NCBI GenBank assembly: GCA_002269645.1
Contig: NIVC01003359.1
Span: 38,497 to 102,496, forward strand
Reading direction: 5' to 3'
Length of the DNA: 64,000 bases
Source: Macrostomum lignano
Lineage: Eukaryota
The position numbers and the translations under genes were made by a program. The notes beneath the pieces were generated by a model. It saw nothing but the letters and a program-made list of their open reading frames with translations, did not search any database and was not told where the DNA came from. Positions within the stretch are counted from its first letter, which is position 1, and each line of letters begins with the position of its first letter. Below are positions 12,701-53,590 of this stretch, in pieces.

Positions 12701-12819
12701 CCGGGGCGACGCTGTGGCCGTACGGCCGGCGTCGTAGACGACAGCGGCGTCAACGTCGCAAAGGTCGACGCGCGGTGTTCCTGTCGGCGGCCAATCTGGT
12801 GTATGAGACCAGCCTGTAG
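6731..12819 (+). CDS. Large (about 2000 aa) mostly disordered Ser/Glu/Lys-rich protein, one long exon broken by about 7 frameshifts
   Basis: Consecutive ORFs 6690-7532, 7499-8179, 8148-10022, 10283-11992 and 12109-12819, plus unlisted bridging frames, join by single-base shifts. Internal repeats (RGQED-like x5; KSRSF..R.KK.TP x2) lie in different frames. Ends ...NLVYETSL*. Confidence 0.7.
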
Positions 12820-18848: not shown

Positions 18849-19006
18849 NNNNNNNNNNNNNNNNNNNNNNNNNNNNNNNNNNNNNNNNNNNNNNNNNNNN
18901 NNNNNNNNNNNNNNNNNNNNNNNNNNNNNNNNNNNNNNNNNNNNNNNNNNNNNNNNNNNNNNNNNNNNNNNNNNNNNNNNNNNNNNNNNNNNNNNNNNNN
19001 NNNNNN
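18849..19006. other. Assembly gap (158 N)
   Basis: Run of N. Confidence 1.
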
Positions 19007-28988: not shown

Positions 28989-29384
28989 CTGGCAAATCTT
29001 CTAATAGATCCTTTTATGTAACAACTCTAATCTGTCCAGAGCCAGTCTTTAGTTTTATGCAACACAATTAATGCTTAAGCCATTCTGCCAAAGCTGCAAG
29101 AGTCTGCAGTGTGTTTGCCAGTCAAAGCCTAATCTAACAGATTTCGCTTTTAACTGCAGGTCGACAACTAGTATTTGATCTAGTTTTAAGCTTCTTATGT
29201 CTTAATTATAAGGGAGGTTTTATTCGCCTGAGAATTTTAGACAAGATATAAAGAGCCAAGTTAAGGCAGAATTTCAGAGTACAAGCTGCTCTTTGCGGCA
29301 AACAGTTTGAAAGCTTTACGAGGTAAGGCAAATACGCTCGTACATAGCTGTAAAAACACAGCTACAAAAATTTTTATTAGCAAT

Positions 29385-32300: not shown

Positions 32301-33320
32301 TATGTCTATAGATTTCAGCCGGAGCCATAGATAGTATCAGGTTAGCAATACGTCTATGGATTTAAGCCGGAGCCATAGACAATATCAGTTTAGCAATACG
32401 TCTATAGATTTAAGTTGGAACCATAGGCAGTATCAGTTTAGCAATATGTCTAGATTTAAGCCGGAGCCATAGACAATATCAGATTAGCAATATGTCTATA
32501 TATTTGAGCCGGAGCCATAGACAATATCAGATTAGCAATATGTCTATATATTTGAGCCGGAGCCATAGACAATATCAGATTAGCAAATGTCTATATATTT
32601 CAGCCGGAGCCATAGACAGTATCAGATTAGCAATGTGTCTATATATTTCAGCCGGAGCCATAGACAGTATCAGATTAGCAATGTGTCTATAGATTTCAGC
32701 CGGAGCCATAGACAATATCAGATTAGCAATGTGTCTATAGATTTCAGCCGGAGCCATAGACAATATCAGATTAGCAATGTGTCTATATATTTGAGCCGGA
32801 GCCATAGACAATATCAGATTAGCAATGTGTCTATAGATTTCAGCCGGAGCCATAGACAGTATCAGATTAGCAATGTGTCTATAGATTTGAGCCGGAGCCA
32901 TAGACAATATCAGATTAGCAATGTGTCTATATATTTGAGCCGGAGCCATAGACAATATCAGATTAGCAATGTGTCTATAGATTTCAGCCGGAGCCATAGA
33001 CAGTATCAGATTAGCAATGTGTCTATAGATTTGAGCCGGAGCCATAGACAATATCAGATTAGCAAATGTCTATAGATTTGAGCCGGAGCCATAGACAGTA
33101 TCAGATTAGCAATGTGTCTATAGATTTCAGCCGGAGCCATAGACAATATCAGATTAGCAAATGTCTATAGATTTCAGCCAGAGCCATAGACAGTATCAGA
33201 TTAGCAAATGTCTATATATTTCAGCCAGAGCCATAGACAGTATCAGATTAGCAATATGTCGATTTCAGCCGGAGCCATAGACAATATCAAATTACAATTC
33301 GCCTGTAGATTTCAGCAGAG
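29385..33320. repeat. 48-bp satellite GTCTATAGATTTCAGCCGGAGCCATAGACAGTATCAGATTAGCAATGT, about 80 copies, with higher-order structure
   Basis: Head-to-tail identical-length units with no spacers. Confidence 0.97.
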
Positions 33321-33971
33321 CATATTCAAGAATTTCCTACGAAATCTACTCTGCAATTACAGTGTAGGTGCATAGAACTAGCTTGTATTTCCCAGGTGAT
33401 TCTTGAAACACTGGCTCTCCTTATGACCCGGTGTAAAAAAATGAAAGTTGCTAACTAGCTTCCCGCAAGCATCTGTCTTGGGAGTTTTTTTGCAACAGAC
33501 TCCGCACCCACAGCCACTGCAGCTTTCATTCATGCGAATCACTCTAGCTTGGTAGAAAAGAAATGCATGGAGCCTTCTCTCCAGCAATAGCTATACGCCT
33601 CCTTTTCCTAAAATGGAGTGAGTGAAACTGAGTGGGCTTCAAGCAGCTGCATCGCTTGCAGGGGCTTTTCAAACAAGTCGCTATATGGAGAAGTTTGCGA
33701 CGCCTCTGCACTCCTCCTGCGCCATGCAATGAGTGAATGAGTTTCGCTTTAACCCCTTCGTTCTTTCATTGCTGCATAGTACAGTCTCAATGATGCAAGC
33801 AACGATGTGCCTTGTATGTTAGTAACACATTAGCTTTCATGTTCTGCAAGAAAGTATCCGTATTTTCTACATCCTTGGATAGAATTTTAAACAGTTATTT
33901 GTCTTGACAACAAAATATACAGCTACCAGCGTAGGATATAATGCTTTTAGTTTGTGAGCTGAGTTTTTTTA

Positions 33972-35318
33972 GTAGGGATCTGAGTGTTTGAGTAGGAATC
34001 TGAGTGCTTGAGTGGGGATCTGAGTGCTTGAGTGGGGATCTGAGTGTTTGAGTAGGGATCTGAGTGCTTGAGTAGGGATCTGAGTGTTTGAGTAGGGATC
34101 TGAGTGTTTGAGTAGGGATCTGAGTGCTTGAGTAGGGATCTGAGTGCTTGAGTGGGGATCTGAATGTTTGAGTAGGGATCTGAGTGTTTGAGTAGGGATC
34201 TGAGTGCTTGAGTAGGGATCTGAGTGTTTGACTAGGGATCTGAGTGTTTGACTAGGGATCTGAGTGTTTGAGTAGGGATCTGAGTGTTTGAGTAGGGATC
34301 TGAGTGTTTGAGTAGGGATCTGAGTGTTTGAGTAGTGATCTGAGTGCTTGAGTAGGGATCTGAGTGTTTGAGTAGTGATCTGAGTGTTTGAGTAGGGATC
34401 TGAGTGCTTGAGTAGGGATCTGAGTGTTTGAGTGGGGATCTGAATGTTTGAGTAGGGATCTGAGTGTTTGAGTAGGGATCTGAGTGCTTGAGTAGGGATC
34501 TGAGTGTTTGACTAGGGATCTGAGTGTTTGACTAGGGATCTGAGTGTTTGAGTAGGGGAGTCTGAGTAGATCTGTTTGAGTAGGGATCTGAGTGTTTGAG
34601 TAGGGATCTGAGTGCTTGAGTGGGGATCTGAGTGAGTGATCTGAGTGTTTGAGTAGGGATCTGAGTGTTTGAGTAGGGATCTGAGTGTTTGAGTGATCTT
34701 GAGTAGGGATCTGAGTGTTTGAGTAGGGATCTGAGTGTTTGAGTAGGGATCTTGAGTAGGGATCTGAGTGCTTGAGTAGGGATCTGAGTGCTTGAGTAGG
34801 GATCTGATGTTTGAGTAGGGATCTGAGTGTTTGAGTAGGGATCTGAGTGCTTGAGTAGGGATCTGAGTGTTTGACTAGGGATCTGAGTGTTTGAGTAGGG
34901 ATCTGAGTGTTTGAGTAGGGATCTGAGTGTTTGAGTAGTGATCTGAGTGCTTGAGTAGGGATCTGAGTGTTTGAGTAGTGATCTGAGTGTTTGAGTAGGG
35001 ATCTGAGTGTTTGAGTAGGGATCTGAGTGTTTGAGTAGGGATCTGAGTGTTTGAGTAGGAATCTGAGTGTTTGAGTAGTGATTCGAGTGTTTGAGTAGGG
35101 ACTTGAGTGCTACTCAAGTCCAAGGAGTGTTTGAGTTCAAGGAGTGTTTGAGTAGTGATCCGAGTGTTTGAGTAAGGATCTGAGTGCTTGAGTAAGGATC
35201 TGAGTGCTTGAATAATGATTCGAGTGTTTGAGTAGGAATCTGAGTGTTTGAGTAGGGATCTGAGTGTTTGAGTAGGAATCTGAGTGTTTGAGTAGGGATC
35301 CGAGTGTTTGAGTAGGGA
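33972..35318. repeat. 20-bp satellite GAGTAGGGATCTGAGTGTTT
   Basis: About 65 copies by length; direct inspection. Confidence 0.97.
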
Positions 35319-36787
35319 ATATGGATGTTTCGGAAAAGTTCATATTTATTCAGCCCAAATGGTTTTCTTTACATTAAGTAAAAGCCGACTCACCTTTCAC
35401 CCCGCTCCGCCCTTTCGTGCAATGTACATCTGCTCGTACACTGGGCGCCCCCACCCCCCACGCGTCAATTTCTCTTCGCTTTATCTAAATAAATAAAGTC
35501 AAACCAGCCAGCGACCCGACCCAGAAGGCCTTTTTTGCTTTTTCTCAACAAACTCTAAAGAGAAAATCAATTGAGTCGTGTCAATTCAATTACAATGGAA
35601 AAATCAGCACTCGCAGATCGTGCAGGCTTCGCCGGAGGCCCGCTGCAAAACATTAACTAACAAAGAAAGTTTTCAGTTTTTTAACCTCTAAATTCCCTAT
35701 AGCTTGCCGTCTGACCTTCCTAATTCCAAAGGAAGCAAGCATGTGCTTTGCCCAAAGTGCACTCACAAGTGTGGCAAGAAAAGAAGCGCTATTGGAGAGC
35801 GGCAACGCTCGAAATACAGTTGTGTTTTTAAACGGATTTTGCAAAGATCTGCTACTTTTTTGCACACCTCTGAATGGAGGGGTTCCGCCATAGACAATTC
35901 TTTTTGTTTAATCTGCGTGCAGAATTGTCAATCTTGCACACTCAATCTTGCAGAATTGGTTTTGTCTATGGTTTAACCACACTGTCTATGAGTAAAATGG
36001 AATCAAATGAGAATGATATTCATGTACACTGACTCATGCGTCTATGGCAAAAAACATGCAGCGAAAACCGGCAGCCTCCGGCGAGCCATCGGGCTGCTTC
36101 CCCGTCAAGTTCAAGTGATTGTTGGTGCGGCTTCAGCAAATCCACTACGGTGAAGTCACGCTTCCGCGATGGAAAACAGAAACAAAAGGCTTTCGGAGCG
36201 CGTAAAAAGCGCTAAAACTGTTTGAGCACTTCCCGAACCCGTGCCGGTCCATTGTCAGCATCCGGGGCTTGACAATGCAATAGGAAGTGGGCATGCAGGT
36301 TGACAGGTAAGAAATTTTCTGCCAAGACATTTCTCCTAGCAACCAATTTGTTTCCCATCGGCTCAGTGCGGGTAACTCAAGTGCGCAAGGATTCACTTGT
36401 AAATGGGGATTGGGAAAGTGAACGCTGTGGGGCAGTGACATGCGAGTAGCGTCATAATCTGATACTCCGTGCTCGCCATCCAGCATTTGAGATTATCAGA
36501 ACCCGGGTTTAAACTGCGATCAAACAGCTGCCCCCCCCAAATGCATTAGTAAACTGTCAGCTCATTTTTGAAACAATCGATCAATGTTTCAGGATGCCGG
36601 AGTGTCTGGCAGAGGCCTTGTTTGACTAGCCCGCACGCCAAGCTGGCGCGCCTTCTCTTTGCACAGATGTCGCCCGGTTTCTGCCAGCTGCTTCACCGCG
36701 GACCCTGAGATTTTGAGGCGCGAGTTTGATGAGACCTTCGGGAAGTATTGGCTGGATTAAACCCGCGGCTGCGGCTGAAGCTAATGT

Positions 36788-37460
36788 AGTGTGGGGAAGG
36801 TTGTGACATAGAGTGTGGGGAAGGTTGTGACATAGAGTGTGGGGAAGGTTGTGACATAGAGTGTGGGGAAGGTTGTGACATAGAGTGTGGGGAAGGTTGT
36901 GACATAGAGTGTGGGGAAGGTTGTGACATAGAGTGTGGGGAAGGTTGTGACATAGAGTGTGGGGAAGGTTGTGACATAGAGTGTGGGGAAGGTTGTGACA
37001 TAGAGTGTGGGGAAGGTTGTGACATAGAGTGTGGGGAAGGTTGTGACATAGAGTGTGGGGAAGGTTGTGACATAGAGTGTGTGGAAGGTGTGTACATAGA
37101 GTGTGGGGAATGGTTGTGACATAGAGTGTGGGGAATGTTGTGACATAGAGTGTGGGAAGGTGTGACATAGAGTGTGGGAAGGTGTGCATAGAGTGTGGAA
37201 GGTGTGCATGGTGTGGTTAATGTACAGATGTGGAATATACTAGAGTGTGTAATTTGTACATAGAGTGGGAGGTTGTGACATGATGTGGCAAGGTTGTGAC
37301 TATGACGGGTTAAGTTGTGAGATAGAGTGGAAGGTTGTGGAGTGTGGCTCTCATTTGGACATATGGTGGGGAGGGTGTGACATATAGAGTGTCGGGAGGG
37401 TGTGACATGGGTGGGAGGGATGTGACTAGATGTGGGAGGTTGTGACATAGAGTGTGGGAT
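36788..37460. repeat. 24-bp minisatellite GTGTGGGGAAGGTTGTGACATAGA, degenerating to the right
   Basis: Direct inspection. Confidence 0.95.
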
Positions 37461-37549
37461 TGTGTGTAGCATAGAGTATGGGGATGGTGGGCATGGTGGA
37501 TCGGGACTGTGGACTCCCGCTGATGATCTGGGATCGAGATCGGGAGGGA

Positions 37550-38801
37550 TGTTCTGATCGGGATCTGGATCGGGATCTGGGATCGGGATCTGGGATCGGG
37601 ATCTGGGATCGGGATCTGGGATAGGGATCTGGGATCGGGATCTGGGATCGGGATCTGGGATCGGGATCTGGGATCGGGATTTGGGATCGGGATCTGGGAT
37701 CGGGATCTGGGATCGGGATCTGGGATCGGGATCTTCGGGATCGGGATCTGGGATCGGGACCTCTCTCGGGATCTGGGATCGGGATCTGGGATCGGGATCT
37801 GGGATGGGATCCTGGGATCGGGATCTGGGATCGGGATCTGGGATCGGGATCTGGGATCGGGATCTGGGATCGGGATCTGGGATCGGGATCTGGATCTGGG
37901 ATCTGGGATCGGGCCTCTGGATCGGATCGGGATCGGGATCGGGATCGGGATCGGGATCGGGAGGGGATCGGGATCTGGGATCGGGATCTGGGATCGGGAT
38001 CTGGGATCGGGATCTGGGATCGGGATCTGGGATCGGGATCTGGGATCGGGATCTGGGATCGGGATCTGGGATCGGGATCTGGGATCGGGATCTGGGATCG
38101 GGATCTGGGATCGGGATCTGGGATCGGGATCTGGGATCGGGATCTGGGATCGGGATCTGGGATCGGGATCTGGGATCGGGATCTGGGATCGGGATCTGGG
38201 ATCGGGATCTGGGATCGGGATCTGGGATCGGGATCTGGGATCGGGATCTGGGATCGGGATCTGGGATCGGGATCTGGGATCGGGATCTGGGATCGGGATC
38301 TGGGATCGGGATCTGGGATCGGGATCTGGGATCGGGATCTGGGATCGGGATCTGGGATCGGGATCTGGGATCGGGATCTGGGATCGGGATCTGGGATCGG
38401 GATCTGGGATCGGGATCTGGGATCGGGATCTGGGATCGGGATCTGGGATCGGGATCTGGGATCGGGATCTGGGATCGGGATCTGGGATCGGGATCTGGGA
38501 TCGGGATCTGGGATCGGGATCTGGGATCGGGATCTGGGATCGGGATCTGGGATCGGGATCTGGGATCGGGATCTGGGATCGGGATCTGGGATCGGGATCT
38601 GGGATCGGGATCTGGGATCGGGATCTGGGATCGGGATCTGGGATCGGGATCTGGGATCGGGATCTGGGATCGGGATCTGGGATCGGGATCTGGGATCGGG
38701 ATCTGGGATCGGGATCTGGGATCGGGATCTGGGATCGGGATCTGGGATCGGGATCTGGGATCGGGATCTGGGATCGGGATCTGGGATCGGGATCTGGGAT
38801 C
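37550..38801. repeat. 13-bp satellite GGGATCTGGGATC, highly homogeneous
   Basis: About 95 copies by length; source of spurious 374-756 aa ORFs. Confidence 0.97.
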
Positions 38802-39661
38802 CTGACCCTGAGCGTTGACGTCACCAGAAAGAGTGAAAAAAGAGGGAGTTTTTTCCTCTTTTCTGCCCCTGCGCCTCGGGGTGGAGGGTTGCAAAAAACC
38901 GGTACAGCCCTCGCCTCGGGTCCCGTGCGCGCAGAAAAAGGCGCCTTGAAAACCGAGTCGCACTCCATCTTTGCGGGCCTCATCCCGCTACTGAATATTG
39001 CATTTCCAGAAGCAGTCGAGTGGGAGGCCGGTGGTTCGTGAAAAACAAAACTCACGACGCGCATCCGGGATCTCGCAGCAGAGCAGCGCCAATTGTCCCC
39101 CACCCAGCAGTTTTCTTTTCATTCTTCCGGCTTGTCGCCCCCAGCCCACCCCCTCGGATCCCCACCTCGGGCGTATCGACGAGGCAGGCATTGTTTTTCA
39201 ATAATTTATCCCCGAGACCGGGAGCATTCCTCCGGCTGGCTGAGAAGGAAGCTGGGTGCTCAACTTGGGGTGGCAGCACGGCGGCAGCATGAGACGGAAT
39301 TCACACCCCATCAGCTTCTCAGCCAGCTCTTGAAATCCGCCTACAGGTATGAATCAGGGGGGGAGGGCAGCCATGGCGGTGTTGACAGCGGCAATGCGTG
39401 AATACCTGCAAAAGTGATGATGCCCAGAGGCTGCCCCATAAATAATTTATCGATCGCCTGGCAGTTTTATGGAGAAGAGTTTCAGATTCATTTCGGCGGC
39501 TCGGCTGAAACTGATTGCGACTTCAGACAGACAAACAGTATTTGAGAATTCCACCTGTGGGGCCGCTTGGCTGGCTTTTATGTCTACCGAATTTGCTGCA
39601 TCTTTAATTCTCACCAAATCTCCTGCAGTCCTAGCTACGATCCCGATACTCCCTGACGCTG

Positions 39662-41041
39662 TAGATCCCATACAGATCCCATACAGATCCCATACAGATC
39701 CCATTCAGATCCCATGCAGATCCCATACAGATCCCATACAGAATCCCACACAGATCCCATACAGATCCCATAAAGTCCCATACAGTCCCATGCAGATCCC
39801 ATACAGATCCCATACAGTCCCATGCAGATCCCATGCAGATCCCATACAGTCCCATGCAGATCCCATGCAGATCCCATACAGATCCCATACAGATCCCATA
39901 CAGTCCCATGCAGATCCCATGCAGATCCCATACAGATCCCATACAGATCCCATACAGTCCCATGCAGATCCCATACAGATCCCGTGCAGATCCCATACAG
40001 ATCCCGTACAGTCCCATGCAGATCCCATACAGATCCCATACAGATATCATACAGTCCCATGCAGATCCCATGCAGATCCCATACAGATCCCATACAGATA
40101 TCATACAGTCCCATACAGATCCCATGCAGATCCCATACAGATCCCATACAGTCCCATGCAGATCCCATACAGATCCCATGCAGATCCCATACAGATCCCG
40201 TGCAGATCCCATACAGATCCCGTGCAGATCCCATACAGATCCGGGTACAGTCCCATTCAGATCCCATACAGATCCCATACAGATATCATACAGATCCCAT
40301 ACAGATCCCATGCAGATCCCATACAGATCCCATACAGATCCCATTCAGATCCCATGCAGATCCCATACAGATCCCATACAGTCCCATGCAGATCCCATAC
40401 AGATCCCGTACAAAAACCCACACAGATCCCATACAGATCCCATAAAGTCCCATACAGATCCCACATGCAGATCCCATACAGATCCCATACAGATCCCATA
40501 CAGATCCCATACAGATCCCATACAGTACCATGCAGATCCCATACAGTCCCATGCAGATCCCATACAGATCCCATACAGTCCCATGCAGATCCCATGCAGA
40601 TCCCATACAGTCCCATGCAGATCCCATGCAGATCCCATGCAGATCCCATACAGATCCCATACAGATCCCATACAGATCCCATACAGATCCCATACAGATA
40701 TCATACAGATCCCATACAGATATCATACAGATCCCATACAGATCCCATACAGATCACATACAGATATCATACAGATCCCATACAGATATCATACAGATCC
40801 CATACAGTCCCATGCAGATCCCATGCAGATCCCATACAGTCCCATGCAGATCCCATACAGATCCCATACAGTCCCATGCAGATCCCATGCAGATCCCATA
40901 CAGTCCCATACAGATCCCATACAGATCCCATACAGATCCCATGCAGATCCCATACAGATCCCATACAGATCCCATACAGATCCCGTACAGTCCCATGCAG
41001 ATCCCATACAGATCCCATACAGATCCCATACAGATCCCATG
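39662..41041. repeat. 10-11-bp satellite CAGATCCCATA / CAGTCCCATG
   Basis: Direct inspection; the reverse complement contains GGGATCTG. Confidence 0.97.
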
Positions 41042-41162
41042 CTTTGAATTGCAGTTCAGTCTGTATGATAATAATCAAGTGGTGTATGTGGATTATAATT
41101 GACACTGCAGTCTTAACGCTTACTTGATTCCCTTCCATGTAGATTGAAATCATTCACAAAAA

Positions 41163-41274
41163 ATGCTAGCAAAAGTTATGTGCGTGTCCATTGTTTTCAC
41201 ACTACTGTTGCTGCTGCATGGAGGGCAGTGGGCCTTGCTGTGCTGCAAGGCGGTACCAGCAGGATAGAGCAGTA
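41163..41274 (+). CDS. Secreted double-knottin-like peptide, exon 1 (signal peptide; needs removal of one base near 41220-41225)
   Basis: MLAKVMCVSIVFTLLLLLHG[fs]GSGPCCAARRYQQDRAV followed by GTA|GTGAGT, a phase-0 donor at 41275. Confidence 0.5.
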
Positions 41275-41575
41275 GTGAGTCAGGTCCGCATGCTGCCGAT
41301 GCCTCATCAATGGTTTCCATCCTAGCGCTCCGCCTATTCAGTGAATGCGGGCTGTCAGAGTTCTCAGCTTCACTCCTCACCCAAAAGCTTCCGGTGCAGT
41401 TTTATCTCAAAATTTCAATTTAAATTTGCTGAAAAAAATCTTTTTGTTCTGACACGTTATTTTAGAACCGTTTCTTAGAAACAAGATTTATAAAGTGCGA
41501 GAAGGCATAGCACGATTTGCTAGTCGTTAAGAAATAAAGTAAGAAATTAAGGCTATATTTCTATAAAACTTTCAG

Positions 41576-41651
41576 TGCGAAAAGGACGGCGGAATCTGCT
41601 TCACGCAGGACGCCTGCTGCGAGGACTTTACCTGCGAGAAGGCTAGCCAGG
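41576..41651 (+). CDS. Secreted double-knottin-like peptide, exon 2 (CEKDGGICFTQDACCEDFTCEKASQ)
   Basis: Acceptor CTTTCAG| (phase 0), donor AGG|GTGAGT (phase 1); C-x6-C-x5-CC-x4-C pattern. Confidence 0.7.
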
Positions 41652-41694
41652 GTGAGTGCGTCTTGGAGCTTTTGGCCGAGATGTCTATGGCTGA

Positions 41695-41860
41695 GATGTC
41701 TATGGCTGAGATGTCTATGGCTGAGATGTCTATGGCTGAGATGTCTATGGCTGAGATGTCTATGGCTGAGATGTCTATGGCCGAGATGAATATACATGGC
41801 CGAGGTGTCTATGGTTGAGGTGTCTACATGTATATGTGGCCGAGGTGTCTATGGCCGAGA
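41695..41860. repeat. 15-bp intronic minisatellite GAGATGTCTATGGCT
   Basis: Direct inspection. Confidence 0.9.
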
Positions 41861-44514
41861 GATTTCTATACATGACCGGGATATCTATAAATGGCCGAGG
41901 TGTCTATCGTGAATGTGAATGGGAAATGATCAATTCGGTATGCCATGATTTAGGCAAATTAAGAGGGAAATTACGAATGCTGCAAAAGCCGCTCCAATTT
42001 GGTTGATTAGGGAGCGAAAGCGAAAATGTCTAAAAAAACGATTACCAATCGGCCTTCAATCAAATGCATCAATTAGCTTAGCATATTCACGCGCCGGCTT
42101 GCTGTTGTGAGCAATGAGCAGTTTGCTGGTCACGCGGCACAGTAATGAACCAATCCTAAATGTGGTCCGAGCAGGTCAATCATAAATCAACTGTAGGTAG
42201 CCGCTGATAGACAAGAGAAAATCCGTTTGTGGGTCTTCGCCCCGAGGCTGAGGCTGAGAGACCGGCGTAGTGAATTGCCAGTAAGGGCAGGACAAGCTTT
42301 AGAGCATAAAGTGCAGACTGTTTTGTATTGCAGATAATTGAAATGTGCATGCCTGGCGCATTGTTGAGCCACTTAATTATGTTGAGCCACTGTTCGCCAA
42401 CACTGGATTTGGTGTATATTGATTGATTGTTGTGCATGTATTTGCATAACGAACAGTGTCAATAATTTTAATCCAGTCAGGGGTGACAACAGCAAACTAT
42501 AAGATTCTTTATTAGTTGCGAAGGAAATGAAACTGAACGAGATTTATGTCAGTTGGCGCGTGACAAACGGAGGCCGATTGAAAACCCAGCCTTCTCTTCT
42601 GTGAGTCCATTGCTGAGTGTGTGTGTGTGTGTGTGTGCGTGTGCGATTTCTGCTGCCGAAATGCAACAAATGAGACTCAAAACCAGCTCAAAGAGCCAGA
42701 AAAAGTAAATCCTCCTTTGGCTAAAGAAGCTCTTTGGTCCGCTGACTGCAATCGGTAATTGAATTTCTTTGGGATTTGGGGGATGCAAAAATCTACAAAA
42801 GTGGCAGCTATACTGCTGATCGTCAACTTTTGACGAGCTTGGCTCATTATTTTTAGTATATTGGATTCTGGAGGCACTTTGACGGCTTGGTCCTCGATTG
42901 TACTGCTGTTCTGCTTTTGTTTACTTACATTTGGGACACGTCTGTGACGGATTTGGGATGCCTTGAATGGTCCAATGACAATCGAGCCACATCTCAGGCG
43001 TTGCTGTGACGGCCTAAGGTTGTGTTAGCTACAGTATAAAAGTGCTTCAGAAGCGATACGAAAAGTAGCAGACAACTGGGAGACATGATCGACCGCTGAC
43101 CAAATTGATTGACCTGGATGTCAATCAATTCCAATCATTTGCGCCTCGCCACTCTGAAAATGACAAGAAATAAGTTTTTGTCACGCTGCACACGGCTGCC
43201 GTCCGTTCATCCACTCCCTGGTGAGGCCCACCATCGACTTTTCCAACCGAAAAAAGGCCCGGCCCTCTTCCGTGAATTTTTTATTTCGCTTAATTATCTC
43301 TCAGCCTATGTCTCTTCAGCCTTCTACTATGTCAGTTTTAATTGCTCATTCAATTTTGACTGTCCCACGGACTCAAGCTAGAAGCCGTTAAGAAGTAGCT
43401 CAGGACGACACTGAGGAGTTTTCCTTGATTGCTCCCCGCTGCAGGGACCTCAGGCAGGGTTGCGTTGAGCACTAGAAATGGCTGCACGACTCGTTCAACG
43501 GTTTGAATAATTTGTATCCTAGGCGGAGTTTCTAAGCAAACAAGCGCCTATAAATGCCTTGTATTTCCTTTTCATTAATAATTGAAGAGTTTGAAAACTG
43601 CAGTCGCGGCTCAGACGGCTGAATTGCAGTCAACAAGGAACTACGGGAGTCGCAAAATTCAGGAAACTTCTACAAAGTTGCATTCTATAGAGCTGCTGTT
43701 TTTCATCGATATGAGACCATTGCCGATAGAACCAAGGACCACCAGAAGTTACCGTTGTTGGCACTTCTATTGTTGATACTTAGTAAGAACCTGTGGAGGA
43801 ATACTCTCGTATAATAAGCGTTCCTGCATCACAAATTTTAGCAAATTTCCTGGTTTTCAAAGTTCAGCTGGGGCTTATGTTATACGAGACAAAAATGACG
43901 GTGTGTTAAAAATGGAGTGTATTAGGTTTTGAAGTACAGAGATTTAATCTGAAATCTATTGCAGGACAAGAAACATACTTTACGATTTTGTCCAACCACA
44001 AATTGGATATAGCTTGATTTTTAATAGCTTTTAATGGCACTTTCGTCGAGGTATAATACTACACATAGCTGATACATCCGCTCGTAAACCGTAGGACAAT
44101 GGGGAAAAGAATGCAGATAGACATTTACGCTACTGTTAGTAGTTTGTTTTAACCCTGTAAAATATCAGAGCTAGGTAAGTTAAAGTATTGTCAGGATTTT
44201 TAAAAAATAGGAAGCGTTGGGACCCAAAGAAAAGGTATTTCAGTTGTGTTGAATGTTTTTAGCTAACACAAAATAGGAATATAATTGGGGCACTAGGAGT
44301 TCCACTATCCCATAACTGTATTGTATGTAAACAATTTTTCTTGCATAAATCTTTCGCGACCCGCATCCTCCATGGCAGAATCCCATTTAACATTGTCGGA
44401 GAAACTGGCCTTTCACTGAAACTGGATAAACTCATGAATCAACCAAAGACAAAACGCATTTGCCCTGCGTGCATTTGCTATTCTGGAAGTTCAGGTGATA
44501 CAAATGGTCATCAG

Positions 44515-44873
44515 GGGTAAACAGTGAAAACTCCTCCCTCAATGTCGCAGCCACCTACGGCCGCTGCACGTCCAACAAGGCACAGCTGGGAAGCGAGGGC
44601 GGCGTCGGCATCGGCGAAATTGTTGGCGACCTCGGAGGCGCCGACGGAGGCAGCGGCGGCCGGGGCAGCAGCGAACGCGTCGGCTGCGACTCGGACGCGG
44701 ACTGCCCGGCCGGTCAGTGCTGCTCGGTGGAGCCCTCCAAGTCCGGCTACCGCGGCCTGGGCGGCAGGCAGGCGTGCCGGCCGGCCGGACCGTCGGGCTG
44801 CAGCGGGCAGAGCGCGGAGAACCTGTTCCAGCAGTACTACAGCGGCCTGTTCCGCAAGCGTCATCAGCCCTGA
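44515..44873 (+). CDS. Secreted double-knottin-like peptide, exon 3 (sixth Cys of domain 1, Gly-rich linker, second Cys domain)
   Basis: A phase-1 acceptor CATCAG|GG gives GVNSENSSLNVAATYGRC...GCDSDADCPAGQCCSVEPSKSGYRGLGGRQACRPAGPSGC...GLFRKRHQP*; high GC3. This frame is not in the ORF track. Confidence 0.65.
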
Positions 44874-45378
44874 ATTAGCAGTTGCAGTCAAGTTGCAATT
44901 GCGATGCTAAACTACTGACAGTAAGCTATGCAGTAGAACTCGGCTATTTTGTTTTGTCACGCTTTGAAGTAGCTCGATTTCGGTTAAACAGATGAATAGA
45001 TTAGACATTTCACCAGCTATTAGAGTGAGAGTAATTCCTGCGAGCTGTTCCCACAGTTATTAATTACCTGTGGCCTGTCAGATTCGATCAACTGCTGCAC
45101 GATAAATTGAAGTTAATGTTAGGAAAAGATATATTTCAACACCTCTATGTGCAACAAAAATATACGGGAACAAATTAATAATTTACAACTCATTTTGTTT
45201 TTATTCTGCACAATTTGGATTGCTCTGCTTTGATTTGCTGTTGCATCGTACTTTCAGTAGAGTGCGGCGAATCTTGTATTAGCATTTTGTACTGAGCCGA
45301 ATCCATTATTTTTCTGTTGGTGGTGCATTGTGGAGATCTGTCGAGGTCAACATGCAGAATTAAAAGGATTCTAATTCC

Positions 45379-45650
45379 TAGTGGTCTAGCGCGGCGTTCT
45401 CATGTGCCAGCGGCCCGGGCTCGATTCCAAGTCCAGTCACATTAATTTGAGGCTAAACTGGAATCTCGGCTTGGCTCTGCTCGTGCAATTAACGGCCTTG
45501 AGGGCCAACCCCCAAGGCACAGTGAAGTGTACATGCCTAACGATAAATAAAGTCAGGGCCGCTGTACACTCCTGTGTGAGTGTGTGCCTGTGCGTGTGAC
45601 TGCGTACGTATCCGCGCGCTTGTGTGCTGCTCAGGGGAGTCGGCGGAATT
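45379..45650 (+). mobile_element. tRNA-derived SINE (copy B)
   Basis: A-box-like TAGTGGTCTAG and B-box-like GGGCTCGATTCC; the body shares GGCACAG..GTG..CATGCCT.ACG.T...AAAGT...CCGCTGT..A and TGTGCT..CAGG.GTC.GCGGAAT with copy A. Confidence 0.6.
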
Positions 45651-48024
45651 TACAGCCCCTGCCTCCAACTATGGGTTTTTCTTGTCAAGTTGAAAATGGT
45701 CAATTCAGAGTTACCAAAAGACCAAGTTAAGTGCATTATAATCATTTCAAGTAGTAGCAGACTCTGAATTTTCTTTTTTGTCCAGTTGCTCTGCAATGTT
45801 GAGAAGCGCTCTGATTGGCTAACTTGCATTTGACTTGGCGATATTTTGGCAGATAAACTGAATTTTATGCACTTGAGATGGCTATGTTAAACGTGAGTTG
45901 AATATTGTGCTACTCAAATCTATTCAAACATTGTATCGTGGCATACTCGTACAAGCTGCATGGGAGTTAAGCAAGTCATGCGTCATTCCTCTGCCTAAAG
46001 AGTTTGGCAAATAGCCGTGGGGCGAGGGCAGGGAGGCCGCCCCCTGTAGCCGTGACACTGGAGCTCTTCAATCGAAGTGATGCCCTTCAATTGAATGGGA
46101 ACTCTTGCTTAACTTTTGTACATTAGCTCGTACAATATATACTATCTGCTATCATAATTATAATACTAGAATATACAAATACGTAAAGGTACCCGTATGG
46201 TTAACAAATTTTTTATAGTTCCAACAGAAGCCCAATTGGCTCACAGTTTAATAAAACGAGTTTTCTGTACATTTTATCAAGAAATTTTCGGCCTAGCAGT
46301 ACCGTAGCGTTTCATATGCAGTTGTTTCATGGACAGCAGAAGTACAGTAGTAGGACGCTAACATAGCTCGATATTCTTAAAAATATTCTGGAGTTCAGTA
46401 AGGAACGACTGGCCTGGGGTTGGGGCCACCGACACCAGCTGCTGCTGCTAATGCTTGAGAGCAGCAGAGGCTACAGTCTATGGTCTGAACCCCGGAATTT
46501 TCGTGCTGCAGCCACGAGTGAATTGTTAGATAACTTGTTCGTTAAACCACCAGTACATTTAGTGGGGGCGGGGGGTTCACAAACGCGAAATTTCACAACC
46601 GCTAAATGCCACTTAAAGTAGGTTGTGAAAGTAGGTGACATTTTATCGGTTGTAAAGTTTCGTGGTTGTGAAGTTTGCGTTTAGGAAAGTGAGTGCAAAA
46701 AATTAGCGGGTTGTGAAATGCACCAGCGATACGACAAATATACATTCCTTTACCGGCCTTCAGATCATTTCTATGAAAACCGAGTCTAAGCGTCGATCTT
46801 TCTACTTCATTCTGAAAAATCTCTAAAAAGTCATGCACTGCAACTCTCGTATTGACTGATTGGCAATTGCGCCACAGCCGGTCATCGTTTAGCAGCATTG
46901 GCCTATACTATACCCCCGCTAGTTTCGGCATGCATGCAGAGTTGGCATTGAATGAATGCACTATTATTACTGCAGTTTTAACATTCGTCATTCTTCGCCA
47001 GTGCTAATTTTAGACTCTCTGGTCTTGCGTATAGAATCGCCCTGCTGGGTGTACACTTTGGAACTAAAGCCGCCCAGCTAGTGGGAAGAGATTCTCGTGC
47101 CACACCCAGACTGTGTACATTTGCGCGGCGAGTGGCGACACGTGGGGGGCCTATTGAACCTTCCAGCGTGGAGAAGTGAATCTTATACTGCTCATAGCGT
47201 CTGACCGTAGCCTATACGTATGAGTTTGCATGACTCATATCATTCTTTTAAAAAAAACATGCACTTTTAGAAGACAAACGCTGACGGTCCAAAATTGAAT
47301 ATTTAGCTAATCTGAAAAAAACGTTTTAATAACAGATGAAATTGCATCCAAACTCAAAAAAGATATTTGTATTCAGTATGCCCGTTTATTGCTCAGTCCC
47401 TTTGATGCGCTGAGTGAGTGACAAGAGTGCAAGGCTAATAAATAACTATACAACATCAATAATTATTCATTTAACACAGATAAACCATAATCGCTTGCAA
47501 TAATAACATTTTATTATACAAGATTCACTAAAAGAACACGCATAGCAGTTTGCATACTGCAGTGCAATGCAGCGAAAGCAAAAACAATCGGATCTCTGAG
47601 ATCAGAGCCAAGCTAGGCAAATACAAAATCTGCGTATCCTTTATTGTGAAAAATCTAGAAACCTTTCGCATCTGCTCAAGGCACGAACCTGCATATAATA
47701 GTATATTTGCGAAATTAAATCTTTTAAAATTGTCCTCAATGAAAAAGTAAAAGCTCAAAGTAGGCAGGTAACAGCGGCCAGCATAAATGTTACACAATAA
47801 ATTTACATATATAAGAAAACTGAATAGTTGACATGGAAACTTGTTCTCAAAATCGAGATTGTTACGCAATTTCTTTGAAATCTACTGTCACTGAGAGGTG
47901 TCACGTGCTGTTCAATCGGGATAATTCCATTTTTAATCCGTAAATTGTTTACAGTTAAAAACAGCAAAAAAACAAAAAAGACATTTAGTTCGAAAAGTGC
48001 AGCTTTCTCCGGTCAAAGTAAATG

Positions 48025-48753
48025 TTAAGTGTCTGGAGTTTCCATGTTTCGCACAATCCACTGCTTGCAGGCTGCGGCTATAGAAGTGAAGTCTTCGAGA
48101 ACGATCGCCAACCTTTGATTGTCTGCTTGAAGAGCTGCAATTTCCTGCTCCTTTACCAAAGTATTCATCTTCCGACTTGCTCTGGACTTTCTCGAAGCTG
48201 CGTTGTTCTTAATGCGCTTTTCGTTTTTCACTTCAGCCTGACCTTCCAAAGCTTTCTGCGTGAACACCTTCTTGCAGGAAGGACCGTCGAGATCCCGCTG
48301 GCACGCTTCTCTCGACTTCTTTTGGCAGGCTGTTTCTGGTGTTCCGTTTGATACTGCAAGGCCAGGAAGCTTAAGTGGTCTTTCTTGAGTGCCTGCATGG
48401 CAACCATGACAGCAAATAATATCAGAATGACTGATGCCTTGGCTGTTTAGTTCCTCCATCACGTCTTCTACAAATGAGGAGTCCTGGATATCTCTGGGCA
48501 GAAATCCGCTGTCAGTGGACAAAACGGAAATTTGTGGTTCGAGTTTCGGCTTCACTGTCACTAATTGAAGTGGAGTAGAGGCAGAGTCGAGATCAATACT
48601 TTCATCTGTGATTTTTCTCTGAGCATAAGATATCGGCTCCGAATCTCTCTTGCAATGCGATGTTTCGTAGCAGCTTGATCCACCACCCCGATTTCTCTTT
48701 ACTGACAGCGCAGTCTTTTGTGGATCAGATACGTCGACATGCTTGCGCGCCAT
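48025..48753 (-). CDS. Intronless bZIP transcription factor (C/EBP- or PAR-like basic region)
   Basis: KRIKNNAASRKSRASRK has the invariant N-x7-R, followed by the heptad zipper IAALQADNQRLAIVLEDF near the C-terminus. Confidence 0.8.
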   Translation of the reverse strand: MARKHVDVSDPQKTALSVKRNRGGGSSCYETSHCKRDSEPISYAQRKITDESIDLDSASTPLQLVTVKPKLEPQISVLSTDSGFLPRDIQDSSFVEDVMEELNSQGISHSDIICCHGCHAGTQERPLKLPGLAVSNGTPETACQKKSREACQRDLDGPSCKKVFTQKALEGQAEVKNEKRIKNNAASRKSRASRKMNTLVKEQEIAALQADNQRLAIVLEDFTSIAAACKQWIVRNMETPDT

Positions 48754-50441
48754 GATCTTAGGTATAGTTTCAAATTACCACAATTTTTGAAGTTATGATA
48801 TTAAACTGGATCAGCTAATGATAACGGTCTCTGGTACACGTAGACGTAGACACATCACACTCACACTGAAACTGGTGGTCTCTGGTAGTATCGAAATTCT
48901 TGTAATTGATGTCTTCCCGCAAAATTTAAATGGCAGAAAAAAAAGATTTTTGAAGCATGTGAATCTAATGCAACCATTGTGAGTTTAGTTTTACATTTTG
49001 AAAACAGTGTATGGTAAAAAAATTCTTAAAAATACTTTGAGTATCTTACTTTAACTCTAAAAGATTAAAGCGGACTCTAAAATGTATCATTTGTTACTTT
49101 GTGCAGTCGTATTCATTCCGTTACACTTTAAAAATTATTGGACAAATTATCTTTAAATGGATTTAACTAGCCAATGTACACAATCCTTGAACAGAATCAG
49201 TGATTAAGAGAATCTGAGAACTCGTTCATGTAGAATCATTAAGTATAAGCTGAAGTTCGGGCATGATGTGATATAAAAAAACGCATTTCTTGGAAAGCAG
49301 AAATCCAGATCAGTCGTTAACTCCAGCTTTAGGCCTGAAAAAATAGTTAGTAACTACTACCACCAGGCAGCCCAGGCTAGCCTATACTATAACATTAAAC
49401 AGTACTTATTAGAGCATGACTAGACTAGGTAGGTCTACTTTGAGTTAAGCACATTGTTGTGTTCATTTGTTTTAAAAACAGTCTAGCAAATTTCATTATT
49501 TTTAAGAGAGAAACATACGATTTTTCACATTGTTTATTGCTATTGTAACAAAAAGTAGGCCTAGGACCTTTCATTATTCAATAGCAGTTTTAGGGGGGAG
49601 ATGCACAGGCACATGCCCCTATCAAGTTTGATTTTTTAATTTTCCTTTGGATAATAGGGCCTACACATTGCATGTACATGTACCATAATATAAATCATAT
49701 ATGTCATATACTTTTAGTAGGCCTAATTAGTAACTAGACATTTTGTCAAAAGCCTTTTCATCAAAAAGTAATTTTGTAATTTTGTCAAAAACTAGGCCTA
49801 TAAAGAGATATGTGCATAATTTCTAATTCTGCTCTGCACTACCACTAGTAGGCCTAGGTATTCATGTAAGCCTACTTTATATATAATATATCATCAAGCA
49901 TGCAAAACAAAAAATTTGACCAAGAAAAGTGCACAAAACAATAGATTTTTTTGCTAGAAGGGCATGGATATTGTTGAATTTAAATGTAGCAATAGAAATA
50001 CTAGTGCCTGGTGTCATTATAAATTTATTAAAGCTCATTCACATTCAGGGCTTTGATTTACTTGACTAAGCTGTAGCCTGCAAGTTGCTCCATACATACA
50101 TCTGGATATAGCAAGGAGGTGTTGCTATCTATTTCATTAAGCCCTGGCAACCATAGGCAACTAGTGCTGCAGTCTTTCAGGTAGATCTAGTGGTGCCAAT
50201 ATTTACAATGTGGTCCCCTTTCTAAAGAGTCTAAGAAATAGATAGTTTTGCTTATCTATTAGCCTTTTAGGTAATGGATAAGTTGCCCTTAGGGCTTTAG
50301 TACCTCACAATATTTTATATTTTGAATGAAGACTTGCACCAATAGCAATATACATTCAATTTTTTACTTTTTGCAAAAAACATTTATTTGTTTTTTGGGA
50401 TGAATTCTACTAGGCCTAGAGGTCAAATGAGCAGAAAATTT

Positions 50442-50827
50442 TAGTCGGGCGTGAAATTTCATGAAATTTTCAAAGTCGGGCGTGATTGTGATTGTGATCG
50501 TAAATTTATATTTGCATACACATATTTTGAGCTCGTAAGTTACAAGTGTTGAAAATAACAAAACAAGAAAAGAAATATTTATAAATTGATAATAGCTACT
50601 CAGTAATGCTGTCAAGTCAACAAATTTAAAATTTATTACTCTTTTACACATTTGTATTCACATATTTTGGTAAACCAAGTAGAAAAGTTATACTTCTAAT
50701 AAAAATGTAATAAAGCAGAAATTCATGACTGGGATCATGAACGGGTTTCAAGGAAATCACGATCGTGAAAAAAATGGTCGTGAATTCATGAAATCGTGAT
50801 CACAATCGTGATCACGTCCGACCCCTA
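50442..50827. mobile_element. Putative MITE with GTCGG(G/A)CGTGA(T) inverted ends and subterminal ATCGTGA repeats
   Basis: TAGTCGGGCGTGA / AAGTCGGGCGTGAT on the left, ATCACGTCCGACCCCTA on the right; TSD not resolved. Confidence 0.35.
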
Positions 50828-51918
50828 AATTCTACCCTGGTATGCATCTTTCTAATCAATTTTTATTTGTATTTATCACTATCATATAATTCAAGCTTGT
50901 TCTTTGTTGGCTACAAAAGTTTTGTGCATTTTATTCTTATTTTTAATCTTGACTTAGCTAGCCATCTAGCATAAATTTAAATATTAGCATATATTAAATA
51001 TTAATATTATTAAAAGGATATTGTTAAGATTGAGTAAGCTTTCCATTTAAATATTTTTAAATTGTTAAAATTATATTTATTATTATATCTTAAACTTAAT
51101 AAACCTTTATTTCTAATAGATGATATATGCCTATTAATAATTGTAAGTAAGAGTAGTATATAATTTATAAAAATTAGGACTATTATTAATTTGATTATTA
51201 AATAAAAACAATTAAATAAAATGTTTAACCCTTTAATAAAGTCTTAGGGTCTCATGGGCCCATGATAGGCCATTTTTTAAATCCTTTTTGTACCTTTTAT
51301 AAATTCTAAAAAATGTTTTTAACTAATTAAAATGATCTTTTAAAGAAAAGTTAAGTTAGGCCCTATAATAATTTTTCCTAAAAAATTACTGATTTTAAAA
51401 TAAATTTAATTAGAACTAACTATAAAATATTTTATTTTCATGTTGACCTCTAATATTGTTGTAATTACTAAGCTTTTATTATATTTTATAACTATCTTTA
51501 AGAAAATTAGAATCCCCTTAAATGGGAAATGAGATTCACCACTTTAATAGCAAATTTGAGATTATTGGAAATTTAGCAATTTAAAATTATTTTAGATTAT
51601 TAGAGTATTAGAAATTGTGACTATTAGAAATAAAGCTGTCCCTTACTAAATATATGGCTAATTATTTAAATAAATTTATTATAGAATAAGCTAATTATAT
51701 TTTTAAAGTGAACTATATCCTGACCTAACTTTTCTTGAAAGATAAATTTTATAAGAAAAATACTATTTAAAATAAATATTACCTCACAGTACCTTGTTAT
51801 TTTCTTAGAATTTTTAGGGGAGTGGAAAGTAAGGAAAGATTGCCATGTATTTCTTATAGAGCCTTTTCTGTTATTGTGGCTTAACCTTTTGAGGGTTAAA
51901 CTATAAGAACAGGTTAAA

Positions 51919-52159
51919 CCATGCGACTTACTTTTTGACAAAAAATGCGACTTACTTGTGAAAGAAACCCTAGAGCAAGATTAATACAATTTTGGGTAAA
52001 CGGCAGGGGTAACTATGCTGGCTTATTAAGGCTAAGTGCCTCGTCAGCTAATTAGTATAGTACCACGTCTGTTCTTTGGGGTGGGCATTTTCGCTACTTC
52101 GTCTACCACAATTTACGGTGGCCGGATCGGCCAGGTCGGCCAGCAGTTGCGCATGTATG
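51919..52159 (-). mobile_element. Truncated inverted copy of the hAT MITE at 54394-54681
   Basis: Ends in GTTGCGCATGTATG and aligns in reverse complement to the other copy; the second TIR is missing. Confidence 0.8.
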
Positions 52160-52269
52160 CCCACAGCACAGCCCTTGTGCAATAATAATGATATTATAAG
52201 GAAGGTCTCATTCATCTGAAATTGTTTCTAACGATTTTTAAGGCTGCCACTGTTTGCAACAAGCTGCCA

Positions 52270-52671
52270 ATGCAGCAGCGCATCATCTATTGGCGCAGTC
52301 TCCGGTGTTGCCATGGCAACAGTGCCGACGCCCAATCAAGCTTGACAAGAAACCGCCATGAGCTGCGACTGGTGTCCAAGGAAAGCCTAATGTGGCACCC
52401 TGGCCATATACACAAAGGTCGGAAGCGCATCAACCAGAAGCTGGCCGCGGTCGATGCATTTGTTGAAGTACACGACGCTCGCATCCCAATAACTGGTCGG
52501 GCTCGCCTGTTTGAGGACAGCCGGGCTGCCAGGCCGCACGCCCTTGTGCTGAACAAGGCCGACTTGGTGGCGCCCAGCGCTCGAGCGTCCTGGAAGCGGT
52601 TTATGGAGGAGCGCGAGGGTCCCAGCAGTCGTGTGTTTCACTGCAGCCTGCGCACTTCGTCAGCTGAACTG
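52270..52671 (+). CDS. MTG1: Mitochondrial ribosome-associated GTPase 1, exon 1
   Basis: WHPGHIHKG (WFPGHM motif), EVHDARIP.TGR, VLNKADL (G4); donor CTG|GTTGGT. Confidence 0.92.
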
Positions 52672-52789
52672 GTTGGTGCAGCATTCTGTAGTGCATTGCT
52701 ATATGAATGCGTTTATTTTTGTGCCTTTGTCAATTTTTATTACCGATAAAAACTAAACTCGCCATCATTTAGGCCTGCGACGATTGTAG

Positions 52790-53590
52790 CCTGTTATCGT
52801 GTTTTGACCGTGCTTTGTGACGTTTTTTATGTCCAGTCAGCAGGTGACTGTTTTGTGGCCGTGTTTTGTGACTGTTCACTGTGACTGTGCTTTGTGACTG
52901 CTAACTGTATCCGTGTTTTGTGTCTGTTCATTGTGACCGTGTGTTGTAAATGTTCACTGTGACCGTGTTTTGTGACTGCTAATTGTATCCGTGTTTTGTT
53001 ACTGTTCACTGTGACCGTGTTTTGTGACTGCTAATTGTATCCGTGTTTTGTTACTGTTCACTGTGACCGTGTTTTGTGACTGCTAATTGTATCCGTGTTT
53101 TGTGACTGTTAATCGTGACCGTGCTTTGTGACTGCTAATTGTATCTGTGTTCCTGGGTTTTTTTAGGCCATACGGTAGCCACTGGCTACCCAAAAAAGCC
53201 ATTGGCAACTGGATTTTAGGCATCAGAGGCCAATCTGGCAACTTCATTTTCCCCGTGCCAGTTGCCAATTTCAAAAATTGTTTTTGTAAGTGTAAAAAAG
53301 CGCCATATGAATTGATATGATATGATAGAATTGTTAGTTTGTTATTGTTATTGTTAGTATAATATGTACATGTTACTCAAAATTTAGTGTCTTGGAAATA
53401 TTTATCCTCAAGAATTTGGCTAGTTGCCAATGGGCAACCAAAAATAGCCATTGGCAACTGGATTTCCAACCTTTAAAAAACCCAGTCTGTGTTTTGTGAC
53501 TGTTAATCGTAAGCGTGCTTTGTGACTGTTCATTGTGACCGTGTTTTGTGACTGTTTATTGTGATTTGTGACTCATGTTTTGTGACCGTT
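52790..53590. repeat. Intronic TG-rich minisatellite (TGTGACCGTGTTTTGTGACTG-type) interrupted by a MITE
   Basis: Direct inspection. Confidence 0.85.
53152..53485. mobile_element. hAT-type MITE (334 bp) in MTG1 intron 1
   Basis: TIR (C)CTGGGTTTTTT ... AAAAAACCCAG; perfect 8-bp TSD TCTGTGTT; internal AGCCATTGGCAACTGGATT x2. Confidence 0.8.

Follow-up and report, generated by a model that had tools for sequence, protein, structure and literature searches.

A Macrostomum lignano gene for a secreted two-domain cysteine-rich peptide and its possible kinship with arthropod ITG-like/prohormone-3 precursors

The closest architectural relatives of the protein considered here are the arthropod ITG-like precursors, also named prohormone-3 or "space blanket" (spab), which are neuropeptide-like proteins with broad expression in insect neurons and whose peptide has been seen by mass spectrometry in brains (PMC5927767, PMC10194420). 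An ITG-like protein was also found to be abundant in the venom of one spider (PMC7407881). In our literature search we found no receptor or function described for ITG-like/prohormone-3. We analyzed a stretch of DNA of 64,000 nucleotides (nt) from the flatworm Macrostomum lignano (contig NIVC01003359.1, positions 38,497 to 102,496), referred to below as the window and numbered from its first base. Positions 41576–44873 of the window carry exons 2 and 3 of the annotated M. lignano gene Mlig016503. Our best explanation of the findings as a whole, to which we give slightly better than even confidence, is that the product of this gene is most likely related, distantly, to the ITG-like/prohormone-3 precursor of arthropods.

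The ITG-like precursor of Tenebrio molitor used for comparison was taken from the supplement of PMC9552230. Its relatives comprised 221 matches, which carried the names prohormone-3, ITG-like peptide or "space blanket", and the named species among the 120 listed were all arthropods. In these precursors the first domain has the framework C-x4-C-x5-CC-x4-C-x9-C and the last domain C-x5-C-x6-CC-x13-C-x8-C, which is followed by a KR site. The ITG-like loci of Tenebrio, Lepeophtheirus and Apis were compared at the level of their introns, and in all three genes a phase-1 intron interrupts the sixth codon past the fifth cysteine (C5), leaving the first base of that codon in the exon that encodes domain 1. 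In Tenebrio and Lepeophtheirus a further intron, in phase 0, separates the N-terminal motif from the first cysteine domain.

A protein search with a provisional join of the window exons returned a sole close database match, PAA60748.1 (BOX15_Mlig016503g1), a 171-aa "hypothetical protein" of M. lignano. The same product is entered in UniProt as A0A1I8GRP7, a second source that encodes the full 171 residues. A first-pass annotation, made from the letters of the window without database searches, had proposed a hidden gene from a probable flatworm; the flatworm origin was borne out by both the closest protein and the closest locus, and the gene itself proved to be annotated already. The Mlig gene annotation was derived from RNA-seq and transcriptome assemblies (PMC5730564). 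We refer to the annotated 171-aa protein as P0001 and to its genomic locus, on contig NIVC01002116.1 of the Mlig_3_7 assembly, as L001. L001 was colinear with window positions 37525–53099 at 99.74% identity, and between 38000 and 53050 the sole differences were three single-base indels, each in a G or C homopolymer. The neighboring gene also agreed with the reference contig: it encodes a 242-aa bZIP protein and lies on the opposite strand, 3.15 kb downstream. The near-identity to L001 and the matching neighbor indicated that the window represents the same locus, in another assembly or as another copy.

Exon 2 (41576–41651, forward strand, 76 nt) is entered in phase 0 and left in phase 1, with the acceptor tttcag/TGC and the donor G/gtgagt. 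Its 25 codons encode the part of domain 1 from C1 to C5, CEKDGGICFTQDACCEDFTCEKASQ, and one further base opens the codon for Ala65; its product was identical to residues 40–64 of P0001, in exact agreement with the position proposed for it in the first-pass annotation. Exon 3 (44551–44873, forward strand, 323 nt with the TGA stop codon at 44871–44873) lies beyond an intron of 2899 nt (intron 2, 41652–44550), and tblastn gave 100% identity over residues 65–171 of P0001. From 5' to 3', this exon encodes the end of domain 1 (C6 at 44565–44567), a Gly/Ser/acidic linker, domain 2 (C110 at 44685–44687 to C148 at 44799–44801), a conserved tail (S152–R166, starting at 44811) and the terminal residues RKRHQP, the protein ending in GLFRKRHQP. 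The Gly-rich linker, the second cysteine domain and the C-terminal RKR that had been read from the window were thus all present. The guanine plus cytosine (GC) content of exon 3 is ~70%, versus ~45% in its flanks.

The start of exon 3 had to be revised. Its end had been placed correctly at the stop codon, and its start at 44515, which is 36 nt upstream of the annotated start. Both candidate acceptors are phase-compatible, and since a spacing of 36 nt keeps the phase, they could not be separated from the sequence alone. The acceptor at 44514/44515 is preceded by a purine-rich stretch. The acceptor at 44550/44551 reads ctcctccctcaatgtcgcag/CC, and the annotated protein runs from KASQ straight into ATYGRC. 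We assigned the acceptor to 44551 because of the transcript-based annotation, the loop of 10–11 residues between C5 and C6 in all paralog groups, and the homologous acceptor position in three paralog loci. With this assignment the 12 residues GVNSENSSLNVA are intronic, the 36 nt at 44515–44550 belong to intron 2, and the C5–C6 loop of domain 1 has 10 residues rather than 22, which removes the earlier concern that the loop was long for an inhibitor cystine knot (ICK).

Annotated exon 1 (117 nt) lies at positions 10001–10117 of L001, ~4.3 kb upstream of exon 2 and directly before a 13-mer satellite, with the donor GCG/gtgagt. It encodes MAHTRRLALTAAASAILLIACCCTADAFIGIIGGKGRGA, which comprises a signal peptide and the conserved mature N-terminus FIGIIGG. 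The earlier description held overall, in that the gene has three exons and its product is a secreted, cysteine-rich peptide with two domains, but it had misplaced exon 1 and the acceptor of exon 3.

The signal peptide encoded by exon 1 would be cleavable, with a predicted cut at TADA/FIG, and a cut before the F/Y residue is suggested by the four paralog groups described below, each of which has small residues at −1 and −3. The mature protein would have ~144 aa and 12 cysteines, arranged as a short N-terminus (F/Y-x-G-I/T-x-G/S-G), an ICK-spaced domain, a linker, a second six-cysteine domain and a tail. Domain 1 has the framework C-x6-C-x5-CC-x4-C-x10-C, a six-cysteine C-C-CC-C-C spacing in the usual ICK range. 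Domain 2, with the framework C-x5-C-x4-CC-x17-C-x7-C, follows the C-C-CC-C-C pattern too, its fourth loop ranging from 15 to 19 residues in the family. The earlier proposal of two tandem knottin-like domains was thus apt for the canonical ICK spacing of domain 1; the two domains are of different types rather than tandem copies. The linker of ~39 residues is Gly-rich and unconserved, and is likely to be flexible and fast-evolving, and the tail (E-x-LF-x-QYYS-x-hydrophobic-x) is probably helical. The basic residues at the end of the tail (RKR, R or KR) suggest trimming by a proprotein convertase and a carboxypeptidase. Our best reading is that the protein would pass through the secretory pathway and serve as an extracellular, disulfide-stabilized ligand or hormone-like factor rather than as a venom component.

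Structures were predicted with AlphaFold2 (AF2), with and without an alignment of six sequences, and both models comprised a pair of small modules, each a beta-hairpin, together with a helix near the C-terminus (~153–162). The Foldseek list obtained against the PDB consisted mostly of ICK peptides and the cysteine-rich domains of Draxin and Dkk4, none of which was significant (best E 0.24); the best ICK matches had E values of 0.3–2 and target TM-scores of 0.56–0.64. This list is compatible with knot-like folds and is no test of them.

The relatives of the protein were few. When 1.84 billion cluster representatives were searched exhaustively with phmmer, only four relatives reached E ≤ 0.001, all from M. 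lignano, and a profile search brought in Mlig015013. The family consists of four M. lignano paralog groups (Mlig016503, Mlig030832, Mlig022787 and Mlig015013), and the members of the last three are named "Ixodegrin protein", "ITG-like peptide" or "Secreted protein" in UniProt and "hypothetical proteins" in GenBank. All four groups had the same three-exon structure and intron phases: the first intron, in phase 0, lies just before C1, and the second, in phase 1, follows the fifth residue beyond C5. The first exons of the paralogs encode a signal peptide and the F/Y-x-G-I/T-x-G/S-G stretch, which is joined in phase 0 directly to C1. In common with Mlig016503, the other three groups have this exon structure, the signal peptide, the F/Y-x-G N-terminus, the spacing of domain 1, the CxxDxDCPxxxCC start of domain 2 and the LFxQYYS tail with basic residues; they differ from it in overall sequence (identity 40–48%), in the length and composition of the linker and in the residues that follow the basic site. 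Domain 2 varies in its last loops, from C-x2-C to C-x8-C. The C5–C6 loop of domain 1 has 10–11 residues.

Conservation was unevenly distributed along the protein. The mean pairwise identity between groups at non-cysteine positions was 0.48 for domain 1, 0.45 for the tail, 0.38 for the mature N-terminus, 0.25 for domain 2 and 0.16 for the linker. The tail, E-x-LF-x-QYYS-x-x-x, was always followed immediately by basic residues (RKR, R or KR), and the C-termini of the paralogs were RKRHQP, RKRFG, R or KRSGKDGDN. A full-text literature search returned no mention of Mlig016503, and we found no earlier description of a two-domain family of this kind in Macrostomum. As far as these literature searches show, this four-group flatworm family with its fixed three-exon structure was previously undescribed.

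The evidence that connects this family to the ITG-like precursors is principally at the level of the intron. The position and phase of the ITG-like intron in the C5–C6 loop are those found in all four flatworm paralog groups, and we estimate the likelihood of such a match arising by chance within a 31-codon domain at ~1–3%. The shared position and phase are moderate evidence for common descent of at least the module that the intron splits. In addition, hhalign of the flatworm and ITG-like profiles gave a probability of 36% and an E value of 3.8e-4, with domain 1 aligned in register. The precursors of both families are secreted, of ~150–230 aa, and begin with an ICK-spaced domain (C-x4/6-C-x5-CC-x4-C-x9/10-C) split by the phase-1 intron; the last domain in each has the framework C-x5-C-x4/6-CC-x13-17-C-x7/8-C, and a basic processing site comes after it. 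The UniProt name "ITG-like peptide" for paralogs in the flatworm family agrees with this link. On this evidence we regard homology of the flatworm family to ITG-like/prohormone-3 as about evenly balanced, if anything slightly short of that. The fuller proposal, that the four groups are true spiralian homologues and that this orphan neuropeptide-like protein predates the split of flatworms and arthropods, is a credible candidate that we hold more tentatively, at somewhat less than even confidence.

Several observations weigh against this interpretation. The ITG-like hidden Markov model (HMM) scores on the flatworm proteins were equalled by 7–13% of cysteine-preserving shuffles, indicating that the sequence similarity between the families does not extend beyond the cysteine framework. 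The hallmarks of ITG-like precursors were absent: the N-terminal WGGLFNRFSPEML motif, which in ITG-like proteins comes directly after the signal peptide, the middle four-cysteine module (C-x5-C-x5-C-x11-C) and the C-terminal KR followed by an I/L-T/S-G peptide. The two AF2 models had low overall confidence (predicted local distance difference test scores of 57.7 and 53.7, with the domains at ~65–80). No Pfam model reached its cut-off, whether the query was the window protein, either of its domains or one of three paralogs. Sequence and profile searches of the PDB, made with the family as a whole and with each domain, were likewise without a significant match, the domain 1 profile having 0 matches. 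Signal-peptide cleavage and C-terminal trimming were deduced from sequence rules only, and a search for expression data in the supplements to three papers on M. lignano (PMC5816591, PMC7336406 and PMC5977470) did not find any of the four gene identifiers.

The tail was considered separately. Its LFxQYYS motif belongs to the flatworm family and is not a feature of ITG-like proteins, and the "LFN" within it was the only resemblance to the ITG-like N-terminal motif and did not rise above shuffles. A circular permutation, with the N-terminal LFNRFS of ITG-like precursors corresponding to the flatworm tail LFNQYYS, was rejected because 22–33% of shuffles scored as well. The tail motif LFxQYYSxxKRSG (44811–44870) also resembles a segment close to the N-terminal end of endothelial nitric oxide synthase (PDB 4cul_A, E 0.27–1.1), which was taken as chance.

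The absence of hallmark motifs and of similarity above the shuffles would also be expected if the family were specific to Macrostomum, its resemblance to ITG-like precursors convergent, as small cysteine frameworks recur, and the intron match coincidental. Such a family could serve lineage-specific secretions, for example as reproductive, adhesive or epidermal gland products. This explanation accounts for the recovery of M. lignano paralogs only in the single-sequence search of 1.84 billion representatives, in which P0001 found no arthropod protein, and for the fast evolution of the linker and of domain 2. However, it has to attribute to coincidence an intron that is kept from copepod to beetle and bee as well as in all four flatworm groups, and to accept as convergent both the equal order of domain types in the two families and the in-register alignment of domain 1 by hhalign. 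We consider this explanation unlikely, although it is the strongest of the alternatives, and retain distant kinship with ITG-like/prohormone-3 as the preferred reading.

A second alternative concerns the copy of the gene in the window rather than the family. A segment of 475 bp of unique sequence in L001 (9661–10135), which includes exon 1, had no match anywhere in the window by tblastn or sensitive blastn. The expected site of exon 1 and its upstream unique sequence, window positions 37216–37524 on the forward strand, holds degenerate satellite-like sequence that retains only colinear 8–11-mers of the unique sequence of L001. Either a local assembly defect or a structural variant in the window therefore removes the promoter and first exon of Mlig016503. 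A true loss, through satellite expansion or rearrangement, would make this copy a 5'-truncated and probably non-functional allele rather than an assembly artifact; it would be consistent with the lack of an N gap at 37216–37524, with the position of the segment between two satellite arrays prone to rearrangement, and with the many duplicated regions of the M. lignano genome (PMC5730564). In contrast, the remaining locus is essentially that of the reference barring homopolymer indels, which points to one sequence that was assembled or polished differently, and colinear unique fragments embedded in satellite-like noise are what a corrupted consensus would be expected to leave. The second source for the gene, A0A1I8GRP7, also encodes the whole 171-aa protein. 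Since the rest of the locus is near-identical save for homopolymer errors, we lean toward a corrupted consensus at 37216–37524, and regard a truly truncated allele as doubtful, somewhat more so than a Macrostomum-specific family.

The toxin-like role suggested in the first-pass annotation was not supported by our analyses. On a toxin reading the protein, whether bivalent toxin or peptide for defense, would resemble the spider double-knot toxins in binding two ion-channel sites, and glands would secrete it for prey capture or defense. The spider ICK toxins, including DkTx and Hi1a, do resemble the flatworm protein in the spacing of domain 1, which is classic for an ICK, and in having two cysteine-rich modules on one chain. 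The weak Foldseek matches included a double-knot toxin, funnel-web delta-toxins, psalmotoxin and tachystatin B (target TM-scores 0.5–0.64, to single knots), and the abundance of ITG-like proteins in one spider's venom (PMC7407881) might be seen as a further indication. However, every fold match had an E value of at least 0.24 and was made with a low-confidence model, and the matches to 6cuc and 2n8f had root-mean-square deviations of 11.7–14.7 Å, that to the double-knot toxin being 11.7 Å. DkTx and Hi1a have two homologous ICK domains and a short linker, whereas the flatworm domains differ in spacing, the second module being of another type, and are separated by a linker of ~39 residues that is long, Gly-rich, unconserved and disordered. 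The best-conserved non-cysteine part besides domain 1 is the C-terminal tail, which has no counterpart in knot toxins. We also know of no venom apparatus in M. lignano, and found nothing that points to expression of the protein in venom or glands. The toxin models of Pfam were all non-significant: of the scores below cut-off, the best were those of Conotoxin_I2 (E 0.03–0.12), Dickkopf_N (E 0.16–0.8; 10–13 bits versus a cut-off of 25), Toxin_12 (E 1.6) and Atracotoxin (E 4.9), so that none of the knottin, prokineticin or Dickkopf types named in the first-pass annotation was matched by a significant Pfam model. We judge a toxin role improbable.

The likeness of domain 2 to prokineticin/AVIT proteins, also raised in the first-pass annotation, was upheld in cysteine spacing only. 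The Pfam Prokineticin model gave no match at E values up to 10. The spacing of domain 2 is that of the first six cysteines of prokineticin-type domains, and a CxxDxDCxxGxCC-type start is common to it and to tick/prokineticin-type domains. Domain 2 differs from the prokineticin/AVIT/colipase fold in having six cysteines rather than ten and a longer C4–C5 loop; being internal, it has no AVIT N-terminus, the predicted mature N-terminus of the protein being FIGIIGG. The tick ixodegrin-2A-like or prokineticin-domain peptides have the framework C-X5-C-X4-C-C-X(9-13)-C-X9-C (PMC2410133), and comparison of this published framework, rather than of tick sequences, with that of domain 2 in the family (C-x5-C-x4-CC-x15-19-C-x2-8-C) showed the first three spacings to be identical, with a fourth loop of 15–19 versus 9–13 residues and a last loop of 2–8 versus 9.

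The exon 1 of the first-pass annotation (41163–41274, forward strand) lies inside annotated intron 1, outside the annotated exons, and its use was unsupported. The open reading frame (ORF) at 41163–41267 encodes 34 aa, MLAKVMCVSIVFTLLLLLHGGQWALLCCKAVPAG, with a TAG stop at 41265; it ends before the GTGAGT donor at 41275 and does not share the frame of that donor. A product begun at the in-frame ATG, at 41218, has no signal peptide. Removal of one base in GGAGGGC, which the earlier model needed if it was not to begin at that ATG, was rejected, as the window is identical to the Mlig_3_7 contig over 41041–41700, these bases included, and gives no support for a sequencing error. Two in-phase donors for this ORF (41252/41253, GTACCA; 41249/41250, GC) were also rejected, having weak consensus, no annotation and a product that lacks the conserved N-terminus. 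The paralog locus compared (L002) had no counterpart of the 41163–41274 exon, and no DNA similarity was detected between this exon and the true exon 1 of L001 or L002, a comparison with no power since the true paralogous first exons do not align with one another either. By a simple score, the ORF had the top hydrophobic core among the 855 ATG-initiated ORFs that the window holds at a minimum length of 25 codons. The ORF is thus not a routine chance ORF; it may represent a first exon, either decayed or used as an alternative, or its rank may be coincidental.

That transcription in this copy starts near 41150 and joins the 41163 ORF to exon 2 as an alternative first exon, through the in-phase donor at 41252/41253 (GCG/gtaccag) or in a true sequence one base shorter, is very improbable: despite its hydrophobic core, its correct strand ~300 nt upstream of exon 2, the perfect GTGAGT that follows it, a donor at 41252 that is phase-compatible without editing and the absence of the upstream exon 1 from the window, the transcript-based annotation does not include this exon, its strong donor is out of frame behind the stop at 41265, GTACCA is poor beside the verified family donors (5/6 of GTGAG type and 1/6 GTAAGA), the reference contig is identical here with GGAGGGC, the product lacks the F/Y-x-G-I-x-G-G N-terminus and the paralog locus has nothing equivalent.

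The remainder of intron 1 (37525–41575, forward strand) is the part of the gene from which colinearity with L001 begins, at the identity given above. Two satellites fill it: a perfect 13-mer repeat, TCTGGGATCGGGA, at 38000–38801 (100% match, ~62 copies), and an 11-mer repeat, AGATCCCATAC, at 39663–41040 (~127 copies). On both strands, these intron 1 satellites create spurious ORFs, the longest of ~750 aa. Within intron 2, a 15-mer minisatellite, TGGCTGAGATGTCTA, occupies 41673–41859 and starts ~20 nt past the exon 2 donor.

In general character the window is eukaryotic, with long satellite arrays, a LINE-like (long interspersed nuclear element) retroelement and scattered GC-rich exons. The neighboring bZIP_2 protein gene is a single exon encoding 242 aa at 48025–48753 on the reverse strand, and is annotated at the same place in the reference contig. 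Upstream of Mlig016503, tandem arrays with periods of ~48 bp and ~20 bp and a gtgtgacatagagtgtgggga repeat extend over 29376–35330 and 36500–37500; these arrays were also found in the reference contig, at 86–96% identity. The LINE-like retroelement lies in a block of 58–64% GC, at 20296–25209 on the forward strand, and includes ORFs with an endonuclease/exonuclease/phosphatase domain (21506–22375, forward strand) and with a reverse transcriptase plus RNase H (22603–25209, forward strand). A run of 158 N bases at 18849–19006 represents a scaffold gap and shows that the assembly behind the window is a scaffolded one. Further upstream, 6690–12819 on the forward strand holds a series of long ORFs of 280, 226, 624, 569 and 236 aa, which may be an uncharacterized repeat element or gene; Pfam gave no match for the three of the five that were searched (280, 624 and 569 aa).

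Taken together, these data partly confirmed the earlier observation of a cysteine-rich gene in this region and lent partial support to its interpretation. The gain for genome annotation is small, as the gene was already in GenBank and UniProt, where its model is more accurate than that of the first-pass annotation. Of the new points, the link to ITG-like/prohormone-3 at the level of the intron is the most useful. If this link holds, a genetically tractable flatworm would provide a second system in which to study the orphan ITG-like protein. The focus would also move from the short "ITG" peptide that gave these proteins their name to their cysteine-rich core, with the intron-split knot domain and the second cysteine domain being the ancient, conserved part.

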